A stretch of DNA of 64,000 nt, taken from Oculina patagonica. Taxonomy: Eukaryota. Position numbers and translations under genes: made by a program. The notes under the pieces were generated by a model. It saw nothing but the letters and a program-made list of their open reading frames with translations. It searched no databases and was not told the origin of the DNA. The stretch is taken from NCBI RefSeq assembly GCF_052425735.1, contig NC_135771.1, positions 2,914,001 through 2,978,000 of the forward strand, written 5' to 3'. The first letter of the stretch is position 1. Each line of letters starts with the position of its first letter. Of the stretch, positions 54,570 to 60,500 are shown piece by piece.

Positions 54570-57500
54570 ATGGTGGACAGTATGGTTGTAGAGAATGGTG
54601 TTCAGCGACTGCAGTTTGTGGTAGGAAGCCAGGACGGTTTGTATAACGACCTACACAGTCCTGCGTTTTTGGGAGATGAAGATCCAAATATTTTCTTTCA
54701 TCGCGTTGACTCTGATCAGATTATTTACCAGCCACGAAGAAAGAGAGCTAAACTCATAGGAAAGTATTTAATGGGAGATGCGCTAGGCGAAGGGTCTTAC
54801 GGTAAAGTCAAGGAAATGCTAGATAGTGAAAATCTCCGGCGCTGTGCGGTGAAAATCATGAAGCGACGCAAACTGCGGCGAATTCCAAACGGGGAGCAAA
54901 ATGTTCAAAGGTGATAATTTATTATTAATTGGTTATGAAGAAATTGTTCGAATTGTTTTATTGGGTTTATCGTCTTTACTACTTTAGTTGTTATTAAATT
55001 TTTGACAGATTTACTGATTTGCCGGCGTAAATTAAAAATGCCTTTGATTTCATGTCAACAGAGAAATTCAGCTACTCAAACGACTCCGGCATCCCAATGT
55101 TATAAAACTCTATGATGTAATTTACGACGAACACAAGCAAAAGATGTATCCTTTTTGTTTGACTACTGTTAATATGTTCAGTTTTAAGGGATTGTTGGTT
55201 TCGGCATGTATTGTAAATTGAACATTAATTTGTTGTGGTTATGAGAACAGCGTGAATGAATGCTGAAAGCATTCGGCCGGAACGTTTAAAGGACGCAACA
55301 ATATACAAACAGATAAGCCAAACTATGATTTGCAAGGATACTGAAATGGATATGTAACAATATATTTTAACCTGGTTAATGATCTATTAAACACAAAATA
55401 TAGCTAGAGTTAATTATTTAAATGTTTCGTTGATAAAATTCCGCAAAAAAAAAAACTGAGGCTGTGCACCAAGAGCCGTCTAACGATAGTTAGCATAACC
55501 ACACTGACCTACTATTGGTAATCGCGCAATCTGATTGGCTACACAGGTGCCTACTATCGATCCGTAGAAGGCTCTCGGAGCGCGCGCGTAGTCTTCGCTA
55601 AATTTTATCAATCAAAACCTTCAATAAATCAATTCTGGCGATATTCTGAGTTTAATAGATCGGTCAGTGGGTTATGCTAACACAATTAGACGGCTCGCTC
55701 TCGGTTTCTACCGGCTTTTGATAGTTGGCTCGGGGCTTCGCCCCTCGCCAACTATCAGCCGGTAGAAACCTCGAGCTTGCCGTCTAATTGTTAATTAGCA
55801 TAACCACACTGACCTACTATTGGAAATCGCGCAATCTGATTGGCTACACAGGTGCCTACTATTGATCCGTAGAAGGCTCTCGGAGCGCGTGCTTAGTCTT
55901 CGCTGAATTTTATCAATCAAAACATTCAATAAATCAACTCTAGCTATATTTTGTGTTTAATAGATCGGTCAGTGGGTTATGCTAACACAATTAGACGGCT
56001 CGCTCTCGGTTTCTACCGGCTTTTGATAGTTGGCTCGGGGCTTCGCCCCTCGCCAACTATCAGCCGGTAGAAACCTCGAGCTTGCCGTCTAATTGTTAAA
56101 TAGAAGGTACCTGTGTAGCCAATCAGATCACGCGTTTTGCCAATAGACGGCAGTTGGGTGATGCTCAATACATAATAGTGGCTAAAGAGACCCACTCCGC
56201 AGGTACTTGCGTTAAGACCTTAACAGATTCCCCACATAGGTACATGATTATGGAATATTGTGTTGGCGAGTTACAAGAGATGTTGGACAGTGTTGAACTA
56301 CATAAATTCCCCATCTGGCAGGCCCATGGGTATGTTGAGACTGTTATTTACAGCGTAAAAAAATATTTGTGTTGTATTATTAATTTTTGGATAAAAAATG
56401 CAATTCTTACTTACTACAGATTGTTTATACAGTCATCTCTCTCTTGACGGACACCTCCATAGGACACACACCTGATGTTGGTCCCATCCTTGCCATTTCT
56501 TCAGTCATTTTACTGTTGTAACTAAACGCCCTATAAAATGGACTCCGGCCCCGAAAGTGTCCATTTTAGAGAGAGTTGGACTGTACTCTACACTGTATCT
56601 CGCTGAGATATGAAATTTCCATGTTGATCTTTTACATTAAAAAAAATTATTCTGTAGGGCAATTCAATGCGGGAGATTTTACCAGAAGTGAGGTTGTCGA
56701 GTGAGAAGGGCGTAAAGACTTCTCATGCTGTTTTCTAGACTGAAATAATTTGTAATATTTTGGGCTGATAGAGGCATCTTTAAATAGTTAAAACTCAAAG
56801 GACATTTGTCCTGTCTTAATCAAATTTGGAGAGGGAGAAGATTAAACATACCTACATACATTTTTGTATCAATGAAAAATTAAACACTGTGTCTGCAAAT
56901 TCCAAATTCCTGTGTCAGTTATAGCAATTTGTGTGTGATCGCTCCTGTTTTTCCCGTTGATTTATAAAATTGTGCACATTTTTTCCCCACTGAAGTCAAT
57001 TAATGGAAAATGCCAAGTTTGAACACAGTTTTTTAGCATGCTGATGTGCAATTATATCTATTAGACTGAAGTCACCCCTGAAGGTCCCTGGTAACGTTAA
57101 ACAGTTTTATATCTTGTCTGTAAAGTTTTGAGGGCAAAAACTTGTGAAATTTCTCGTTGTTTTGGAGCTACTGTTTTCCTGCTCAATATAATAGTCTTGA
57201 GGTGCTTTGTTGTCTTGGTCCTTCTTTGTTTTATGTCACTGGCGAGTTTCACAGGTTTGTACTCCGAGGATGAGCCAATTTTGTTGAGCTTTCATTTGAT
57301 GTCATCTTTTAAACCTTTAGTATCTAAGATGGCAATTTTGATAGGGACATAATTTCTTTTGATATATACTTTTTTATTTGTAGGTACTTCTGTCAATTGT
57401 TGGATGGTCTTGACTTCTTACACTGTCAAGGAATTATCCATAAAGATATCCTTTCTCAAAGTTGTTATGTTTTCATTTGCATGTTTAGACTCAAATCAAC

Positions 57501-60500
57501 ACTTCAGTTCAGTTGGTCCACATTTAGCTTTGTATGTGGTCAATCTAATCATAGTGTTGGCTACATCGTCATGTGGTTGACACCAATTGTTTACATTTAA
57601 CCACAGCCCACGAGTTTGGAACAAAGAGTTTATTGTCAGACTGAAAACTAAGATACAAGAGCTGATGACAATATAACTCCAACACCTTAAGGGTGGGAGG
57701 GATTTAGGGTAACAAAATTTGCTTGACCGCAATTACAAGAGATTATGACTGATTCACATGTTACTTGTACAAAGATAATATAATTCTTATGACGCAATAA
57801 CACTTAACAATTAACCATCCTCACAAGGTGACGATTGACACGTATAAATTCAATTAATGCATTTTTATGGCCATAAAAATTAAATTACATTGCATTCACA
57901 TATATTAATATTACATTATGACTGTGTTATTGTACAATAAAGTATCTGAACTGCAAGTACATGTAGAACCATACCCCAGAGTGTACATAACTAAATTGAA
58001 ATAAACCTTAACTATGTACTACATATCAAACCAGGGAATTTACTTCTAGCCACTGATGGAACATTAAAGATATCTGACTTCGGAGTTGCAGAGGTTAGGT
58101 TAAATTAATTTTATTAGTTAGTAAATACTGTGGTCAACTCAACCCTGTTGTAACTCATTGTTGTTCGTCCTTCGTATTCGAAGATGACCATAAGACATCT
58201 ACTAACTAACTAGTAGTTCTAGTAGTAAAGTAGATGGCTGATAAGGCCAATCTGGGCAAGGAAGCCTCTCCCACATGTGGAGCAGAAGTGGGTAGGGGCT
58301 GTGCTGTTTGTGCTGACGGCTCTTCCCTTGCGTGCTGCTCGCTTCTCCTCGGCTTGACGGGACCTGCGTTTCTCTGCTGCCTGGGCTCCTTTGGTGATGC
58401 ATTGGCGCCAGGAGGGTCTGTCGGAGGCAAGAGACTCCCAGGACTCAGTGCTGATGTTAAAGTCTTTTAGGGAGACTTTCAGACTGTCCTTGTAGCGCTT
58501 TCGTTGCCCTCCAACTGTGCGCTTGCCAGAGCAGAGTTCTCCGTAGAAGAGCTGCTTTGGAATGCGATCGTCTGGCATGCGAGAGACATGGCCTGCCCAT
58601 CTCAGCTGGGCCTTGCGCATGATGGTTATGGCGCTGGGAAGGTCTGCCTGCTTCAGTACTTCCGTGTCCGGGACTTTGTCCTGCCAGCGAATGTGGAGAA
58701 TGTTTCGGAGGCACCTCAGATGGAAGTGGTTGATCAGCTTCTCATGCCGTCTGTACGCAGTCCAGGTTTTGCAACCGTACAGTAGGGTGGTGAGGACCAC
58801 AGCACGGTAGACTTTAAGCTTGGTTAAAGACACATGCAAATTGGGTAGCATGGTTGGCACAGTGGTAAGAGCCATGGCTTCCCACCAAATGCAATGAAAT
58901 CTACTTTTGAATGCTGACTCTCACATCATACACCCTTTGTGGATGGAATTTGTTATTAGTTCTTTTTTCTGCTCTGAATGTTCTTTGCCAGGTTTCTCAG
59001 TTTTCCTCCCTGACCTCAAAAGCCGGCATGCCAAATTCCAATTTGATCTCACTGGTGTCAGTGTGCAATTAGTGTTAGCCTTGTAGGGTCTATAATTTAT
59101 GTCACTGTTTTATCAGTTAAAAGTGTTAAATGGGTTGGGTACCTCTTGTACTTGAGTCGTGCCCCCAGAATGGATCATAAGGAGTCATTTTCAAGATTTC
59201 AAATCTATGAGCATTCCCAACATTTTTATATAGGAACCCCAAGAGATATTCCTTACAGTATGTGTTGTGGCTTAAATTTACCTTTGGCTTAAAATTTTTG
59301 GTTAAGGTAAAGTTAAAACTTAGACTACAACATATCCATTTATTATTTACTAAACATATCCACCGTTTTCTCATTTCAAACACATTGATTAATATCAGAA
59401 GCATAAATTAAAAAAGGGAAGCCTTGAGCCAAGTGGCCCATACTTGCCGGAGCTTATCCCAGTTTCTGTAGCATTAACTGCTAGGAATATTACTACTCCC
59501 CCCTGAATGGAATGCTAGTCCATCGCAAGGTACCCCCAGCATTATGTCGCCGGTATACTGTACCCATTTATGCACCTGGGTGGAGAGAGGCACTATAAGA
59601 GTAAAGTGTCTTGACCAAGAACACAACACAATGACCGCAGCCAGGCCTTAAACCCAGACTGCTCGATCTGGAGTCGGTTGCATTAACCATTAGGCCACCA
59701 CGCCTCCTATATTAGAAGCATGCTTCTGTTAATATGTTGTTAATGACTGTTAAATTTTCTTCTGTTACTGTAGCAATTGGGACCATTTGCTGTTGATGAC
59801 ACTTGCAGAACAAGTCAGGGATCTCCTGCATTCCAACCACCAGAGATTGCCAATGGATTAGAAACATTCTCTGGCTTTAAAGTTGACATATGGGCTGCTG
59901 GAGTAACCCTGTACGTGTTTGGTATTCAGTAATTAATAATTATATTTTTATCCTTTCACTGAAAACAGGCTGATTATCCAAATGCTTACAAAATCTTAGT
60001 GGGTGCTTGTTTGCTCGTGATTGCATAATTATTTTTACAAGTGCTCGTTGCTTGCAATACTAACTTTTGTCAATGCTCATGCTTACGAATGCTCACGAAG
60101 ACCACCTGTCACCTCTTTCATTGTAGGAGCAATGAAAACAATTAGCTTGCTAGTGAGACCTTCTGTTGTGGTTTGAAATTATTTTGTTTCTGGTTTGAAA
60201 CGTTGTAAACCATTCGGATATTTAGTTTCTTTTTTTATGTTTTGTTTGTTACATGTAAAAGGAAAAGACTCTTACAATTGCTAATCTCCCACCAGCCAGA
60301 AAACCTGAGAAAATGCCAGCGAATGAGCTTGATTTGTTGACTTTTATATGCATGTGGTACAGGGATGTGTAACCACATGGTGTAACAGGATGTGAAATAA
60401 TCAGTCTAATTAACAAACTTCTTTTAATTATCCAGTTACAACATCACTACAGGAAAATATCCCTTTGAAGGAGAGAATATCTATAAATTGTTTGAAAATA

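Follow-up and report, generated by a model that had tools for sequence, protein, structure and literature searches.

Human STK11, also known as LKB1, carries a U12-type (minor) intron of the AT-AC subtype as its intron 2, and mutation of this intron leads to its retention or to cryptic splicing and to loss of function (Hastings et al. 2005, cited in PMC12366057 and PMC3291851). Genes with more than one U12-type intron per pre-mRNA are also known, e.g., those for the alpha subunits of voltage-gated channels, in which the multiple introns have been tied to internal or whole-genome duplication (PMC2831892), and 722 minor introns in 699 human genes have been counted (PMC7507305). Here we describe the STK11/LKB1 gene of the stony coral Oculina patagonica, which occupies the plus strand of a stretch of 64,000 nucleotides (assembly GCF_052425735.1, contig NC_135771.1, positions 2,914,001 to 2,978,000; hereafter the window, numbered from its first base), and in which a second, AT-AC intron at 57446-58022 interrupts the codon of the catalytic-loop aspartate.

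The coral gene shares with its human counterpart both the gene and the intron class, since it keeps an intron at the same Met codon in phase 2. It differs in having a second U12-type intron 223 coding nt downstream, at the Asp codon of the HKD motif, which human STK11 is not known to have and all sampled bilaterians lack, and in that its intron 2, as in the other scleractinians seen, appears to have changed from the AT-AC to the GT-AG subtype. Introns of the same position and phase are implied by three RefSeq models (P0179, P0188, P0189), and in Acropora and Exaiptasia the U12-type signals were verified. Like the channel genes, coral STK11 has more than one U12-type intron per pre-mRNA, but it encodes a single-domain kinase.

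A first-pass annotation, made from the letters of the window, had proposed the extra AT-AC intron, and we consider it very probable that 57446-58022 is a genuine, constitutively removed U12-dependent intron in phase 1 of the Asp codon. The observations that carry this reading are its splice signals, an exact transcript junction, the snRNA (small nuclear RNA) genes of the genome and conservation among relatives. The intron opens with ATATCCTTTC, and its donor, ATATCCTTT, agrees with the U12-type consensus at nine of nine positions, fitting [A/G]TATCCTT from the first intron base. At the other end, CCTTAAC stands at 58006-58012, near the 3' end as expected of a TCCTTRAC-like box (about 10-15 nt), the sequence that follows the branch box (TATGTACTAC) has no polypyrimidine tract, and the intron closes with TAC at 58022. 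Its AT-AC termini are an accepted U12-type pair and its phase 1 position agrees with the known under-representation of phase 0 among minor introns (PMC10639083). When exons 4a and 4b are joined as AAAG/ATATC (the slash marks the junction), HKDIKPGN is rebuilt. All components looked for in the genome scored above the Rfam gathering thresholds, namely U12 (n = 3), U6atac (n = 2), U11 (n = 2) and U4atac (n = 1). In short, the intron is a textbook example of the U12-type AT-AC class, and its position is specific to a lineage.

AT-AC termini by themselves are also compatible with removal by the major, U2-dependent spliceosome, which cuts out a rare class of introns that have these ends and otherwise U2-like signals. 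Such introns should combine a U2-like donor with a degenerate branch site and a polypyrimidine tract, whereas the coral intron has a full U12 consensus donor, a CCTTAAC box at the distance typical of U12-type introns and no such tract. Furthermore, donor and branch box are kept in seven hexacoral sequences while intron length varies between 212 and 1133 nt, and U2-dependent removal is accordingly very unlikely.

For transcript evidence, contigs from four public runs (X1-X4; four studies, three organism labels), which were only guessed to be RNA, were aligned to positions 55000-60000. The joint 57445 to 58023 (AT..AC, skipping 577 nt) was present in one contig of each of the four runs at a depth of 35-226; this is the junction that the first-pass annotation had named as a check. 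The junction-bearing contigs were 1038-1508 nt long (for the three of four lengths listed), and the same contigs also joined 55145/56240, 56328/57383 and 58091/59772. Apart from spliced RNA, only a retrocopy could give a contig with four consecutive exon joints, and the genome search shows no retrocopy. It is thus exceedingly improbable that faulty assembly, a recent insertion or a polymorphism accounts for the apparent intron and that the functional mRNA comes from elsewhere: the spliced contigs match the locus exon by exon, a six-frame search found no second STK11 locus in the genome, six other hexacoral sequences carry the intron at this very position, and no point in support of this explanation was found.

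The exact cut was addressed by enumeration. Because ATATC stands on both sides of the intron, six cuts are equivalent by sliding, and these are the only ones that yield the observed mRNA; AT..AC is the sole recognised terminal pair among them. The alternative that other GT-AG sites might restore HKDIKPGN, raised at the outset as a possible refutation, found no candidate, as no in-frame, stop-free GT/GC..AG pair restored the motif in the enumeration; the nearest, 57461/58034, gives HKDILSQRN. Chance is excluded by three things together: the frame is restored exactly, transcripts support the junction, and seven hexacoral sequences share both the position and the signals.

Several points nevertheless weigh against a constitutive, U12-dependent intron. 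Low-depth contigs lie inside it, e.g., X4 at 57470-57686 with a depth of 6 against 94 for the spliced contig, and these fit pre-mRNA or slight retention. Since expression levels and rare isoforms are not visible in contigs, a small share of cryptic or retained forms is compatible with the data, and the RNA nature of the runs is itself a guess. The mRNA alone leaves the 5-nt ATATC ambiguity over the exact cut. Finally, we infer both the minor spliceosome as the machine that removes the intron and any regulatory role.

If the minor spliceosome acts here, ATATCCTTT would be recognised by U11 and then by U6atac, U12 would pair with ACCTTAAC, the branch A would attack, and the exons would be joined as AAAG/ATATC to encode HKDIKPGN. 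With both the extra intron and the conserved intron 2, each pre-mRNA would have to undergo minor splicing twice. If the extra intron were retained, translation would read through to a stop about 50 codons on, and the product would be without the Lys and Asn of the catalytic loop and without the DFG motif; it follows logically that kinase activity would be reliant on minor splicing.

The identity of the gene is clear: it is the single-copy scleractinian STK11/LKB1 orthologue. Coding exons were rebuilt from sequence and homology (Table 1), and the resulting 382-residue window translation is 99.5% identical to the O. patagonica STK11-like protein (P0183), 84-90% identical to other scleractinian transcripts and 72-74% identical to vertebrate STK11; the close relative P0182 matches Pkinase at E 8e-63. 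No STK11 retrocopy or second locus was found in a six-frame search of the whole 529-Mb genome, in which identities of 67-92% occurred only at C14:2968582-2979058 and all other matches were at or below 50%. The exon structure is of the orthologue type, with lengths of 84/90/(62+71)/137/128/58 nt and a U12-type intron at the Met125-equivalent codon. We take human exons 2, 3, 5, 6 and 7 to be 84, 90, 137, 128 and 58 nt long, equal to those of the coral, and human exon 4 to be an undivided 133 nt, which is also the sum of coral exons 4a and 4b, in agreement with the division of a human-type exon 4 that had been proposed. Undivided exons of the 133-nt class were seen in Saccoglossus, Branchiostoma, Asterias and Haliotis.

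Table 1. Features of the O. patagonica STK11/LKB1 gene, in window coordinates unless a contig is named.
Feature	Coordinates	Strand	Length (nt)	Details and basis
Exon 1, coding part	54570..54910	+		start ATG to donor AG/gtgata; 113-aa translation matches STK11 proteins down to E 1e-65
Exon 2	55062..55145	+	84	ends ...AAG AT; joint 55145 to 56240 in contigs of 4 runs
Intron 2 of LKB1, conserved	55146..56239	+		U12-type, GT-AG subtype; phase 2 in Met codon of KQKM/Y
Exon 3	56240..56329	+	90	sequence and contig joints
Exon 4a	57384..57445	+	62	3' end CAT AAA G: His, Lys and base 1 of the catalytic Asp codon
AT-AC U12-type intron	57446..58022	+	577	phase 1 in Asp codon of HKDIKPGN (G/AT)
U12-type 5' splice site	57446..57454	+		ATATCCTTT
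Branch-site box	58005..58012	+		ACCTTAAC; branch A = 58011, 11 nt before last intron base
Exon 4b	58023..58093	+	71	starts AT ATC AAA CCA GGG AAT (rest of Asp, IKPGN); extends through DFG motif
Exon 5	59774..59910	+	137	sequence/homology and contig joint
Exon 6	60436..60563	+	128	sequence and homology
Exon 7	61701..61758	+	58	sequence and homology
Exon 8	62307..62482	+	176	sequence and homology
Last coding exon	G000:C14:2978957-2979058			about 960 nt past window end; genome search

The HKD region was located in 14 further sequences, which came from orthologue loci identified by exact protein look-up and from one metagenome scan. The 80 loci of the scan were mostly transcripts or compact animals; several of them have also lost intron 2 and could not be placed, and these were excluded from the question of gain or loss. 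An intron of the same position and phase was present in three scleractinian contigs (L007, L011, L047), Acropora digitifera (L016), Nematostella vectensis (L014) and Exaiptasia diaphana (L015), i.e., in seven of seven hexacoral sequences including the window. Across all seven the donor ATATCCTT is identical and a branch box of the form [A/T]CCTT[A/G]AC lies 11-12 nt from the 3' junction. The orthologous introns end in AC, except for AA in Exaiptasia. From this distribution, the intron dates back at least to the ancestor that stony corals last shared with sea anemones. It was absent, with exon 4 undivided, from Saccoglossus, Branchiostoma, Asterias, Haliotis, an insect-like contig (L079) and several compact animal contigs, and human STK11 is not known to have an intron at this Asp codon either.

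In Hydra vulgaris, STK11 (L005, 2001-3314) is a single uninterrupted open reading frame (ORF) of 1314 nt with no introns, which reads AAAGATATCAAACC across the junction, the same as the spliced hexacoral mRNA. As the whole gene is intronless, Hydra is uninformative on the origin of the intron. A near-coincident intron was also seen in an AT-rich eukaryote from metagenomes (L073, 7959-8058, and L074), where a GT-AG intron of about 98 nt splits CAT AG/A GAT, so that it lies 2 nt upstream of where the coral intron does and differs from it in phase. The STK11-like gene in question shares no metazoan intron positions, and this intron is probably of independent origin, to judge from the sequences.

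AT-AA termini are the commonest non-canonical ends of minor introns (PMC10639083), and they are shared by the Exaiptasia orthologue and its intron 2, while the window intron has canonical AT-AC ends. In the Exaiptasia locus, both STK11 U12-type introns (3347-3795 and about 1049-2605) end in AA, and the RefSeq protein agrees (KQKIYM, HKDIKPSN).

The first-pass annotation had offered two origins for the intron, ancestral presence with loss in the human lineage or a rare U12 gain. The choice can be narrowed: the intron is at least as old as Hexacorallia and is missing from every sampled bilaterian phylum, so a loss would have to be placed at or before the bilaterian stem rather than in the human lineage, or else the gain on the cnidarian side. 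On the sampled tree, one gain and one loss are equally parsimonious. This tree is without octocoral, intron-bearing medusozoan, sponge, placozoan and ctenophore STK11 loci, and protein-cluster look-ups for STK11 relatives turned up no taxa other than bilaterians, Hydra, fungus-like organisms and a choanoflagellate (as a transcriptome).

We lean modestly towards an intron that the common ancestor of Cnidaria and Bilateria already had, or that is older still, with a single loss on the bilaterian stem, because published U12 intron loss in animals greatly exceeds gain (PMC2831892) and because the minor-intron density of Acropora is above that of most vertebrates (PMC10639083), as expected if ancestral minor introns were kept. 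Against this, none of the five sampled bilaterian phyla keeps the intron, even the slowly evolving, U12-rich ones that have an AT-AC intron 2, and the sample is without outgroup evidence. A rare U12 gain on the cnidarian side once Bilateria had split off, in the stem of the cnidarians, the anthozoans or the hexacorals, is a less favoured but serious alternative. It would account for presence in all seven hexacoral sequences and absence from the hemichordate, cephalochordate, echinoderm, mollusc and insect-like loci, and the AT-AC intron is the sole discordant one among the intron positions examined, all others being common to coral and bilaterians. However, U12 gain is reported to be very rare and loss common (PMC2831892), and both the loci missing from the sample and the intronless Hydra gene count against it. 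Tentatively, such a gain could be pictured as an insertion on the cnidarian or anthozoan branch at AAAG/ATATC of the HKD codon, in a gene that already had one U12 intron, with the flanking ATATC as a possible relic of insertion; if true, this would join a very short list of datable U12 gains in animals.

The repeat of ATATC at the start of the intron and of the following exon had been put forward as what a duplicated proto-splice site would leave behind, and this we reject, as target-site duplication or proto-splice evidence alike, because codon and consensus constraints explain it. The U12 donor consensus sets the intron copy, whereas the exon copy consists of the Asp-Ile codons (G/AT ATC); given Asp-Ile, the chance of the repeat is roughly 1 in 6. 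The exon-side copy differs in two relatives (ATATT in L047, ATATA in Exaiptasia), and bilaterians without the intron mostly read GAC ATC. The repeat is expected under either origin and is no evidence for duplication.

The claim that the gene has two U12-type introns also holds. Intron 2 has the donor GTATCCTTT, a CCTTAAC branch site at 56218-56224 and an AG acceptor, it is spliced in the same contigs as the AT-AC intron, and its position equals that of the human U12-type intron 2 (c.374/375, Met125; PMC12366057). It is of the AT-AC subtype in Nematostella (L014) and in three deuterostomes, Saccoglossus, Branchiostoma and Asterias (L017-L019), AT-AA in Exaiptasia (L015), and GT-AG in the window, Acropora (L016) and two coral metagenome contigs (L007, L011), i.e., in each of the four sequences seen from scleractinians. 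The pattern suggests that the subtype of intron 2 changed on the scleractinian branch, with the hexacoral-specific intron staying AT-AC. In two compact animal contigs (L075, L078), STK11 introns are 50-110 nt long, the boundaries of exon 4 are kept and intron 2 is missing altogether; these lineages have lost the conserved U12 intron 2.

Gene predictors restricted to GT-AG introns had been expected to render this kinase broken, and four public protein models are indeed wrong at the AT-AC intron. Stylophora PFX14355.1 (P0002) skips exons 2, 4a and 4b, Desmophyllum pertusum P0191 has 17 residues deleted through an internal GT-AG intron, and an old Nematostella model (P0190) reads HKDILFQPSN via a GT-AG pair 15 nt downstream. 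The fourth is the O. patagonica protein itself (P0183), which reads HKDILSGN, with L-S instead of the catalytic-loop K-P. On the window sequence, this peptide would be obtained only from the same 577-nt gap shifted by 9-11 nt (CT..AC, TC..CC or CA..CA); CT-AC is the reverse complement of GT-AG, a type of artefact discussed in PMC10639083. By comparison, the RefSeq models of Stylophora pistillata (P0179) and Acropora digitifera (P0188) read HKDIKPGN and that of Exaiptasia diaphana (P0189) HKDIKPSN, all correctly spliced, so some public annotation already contains the intron implicitly. HKDIKPGN is also the reading of all transcript-derived ORFs of relatives. Literature searches found no paper describing this intron.

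Some public LKB1 models of corals and anemones seem kinase-dead or truncated only through a mishandled AT-AC intron, and it would be misleading to infer lost LKB1-AMPK signalling in cnidarians from such proteins, or to train on them. The locus also provides a clean, datable U12 intron difference that separates Hexacorallia from Bilateria, although the remaining intron positions of the gene are common to both; depending on the outgroups, it represents either a rare U12 gain or a stem-bilaterian loss, the former being the more interesting. More speculatively, two minor introns in a master energy-sensing kinase might make coral LKB1 output doubly sensitive to minor-spliceosome activity.

Two other stretches within STK11 introns, 59342-59675 and 55501-56168, had very deep contig coverage in all four runs, with a summed depth of up to about 48,000 and 51-85 contigs at one site. 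They look like high-copy transcribed repeat families outside the STK11 mRNA.

Elsewhere in the window, near-identical AACCGGTATCCTTTG strings on the minus strand at 18560, 15176, 11705, 8475 and 1940, about 3.3 kb apart, mimic U12 donors. The five minus-strand GTATCCTTTG strings at this spacing were considered as U12 donors and rejected, with stops in all upstream frames and no consistent branch site or acceptor. The donor-like strings are probably the reverse strand of a tandemly repeated plus-strand unit. Just upstream of STK11, on the plus strand at 48664-50399, Arg/Ser-rich ORFs end in ...ANELRAKLGLKPL and give a sub-threshold match to the HIND motif (PF19252, E 1.7e-4); from its sequence, a SART1/Snu66-like splicing-factor gene seems to have its 5' part here. 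Within it, ATATCCTTTGC occurs at 49002 on the plus strand.

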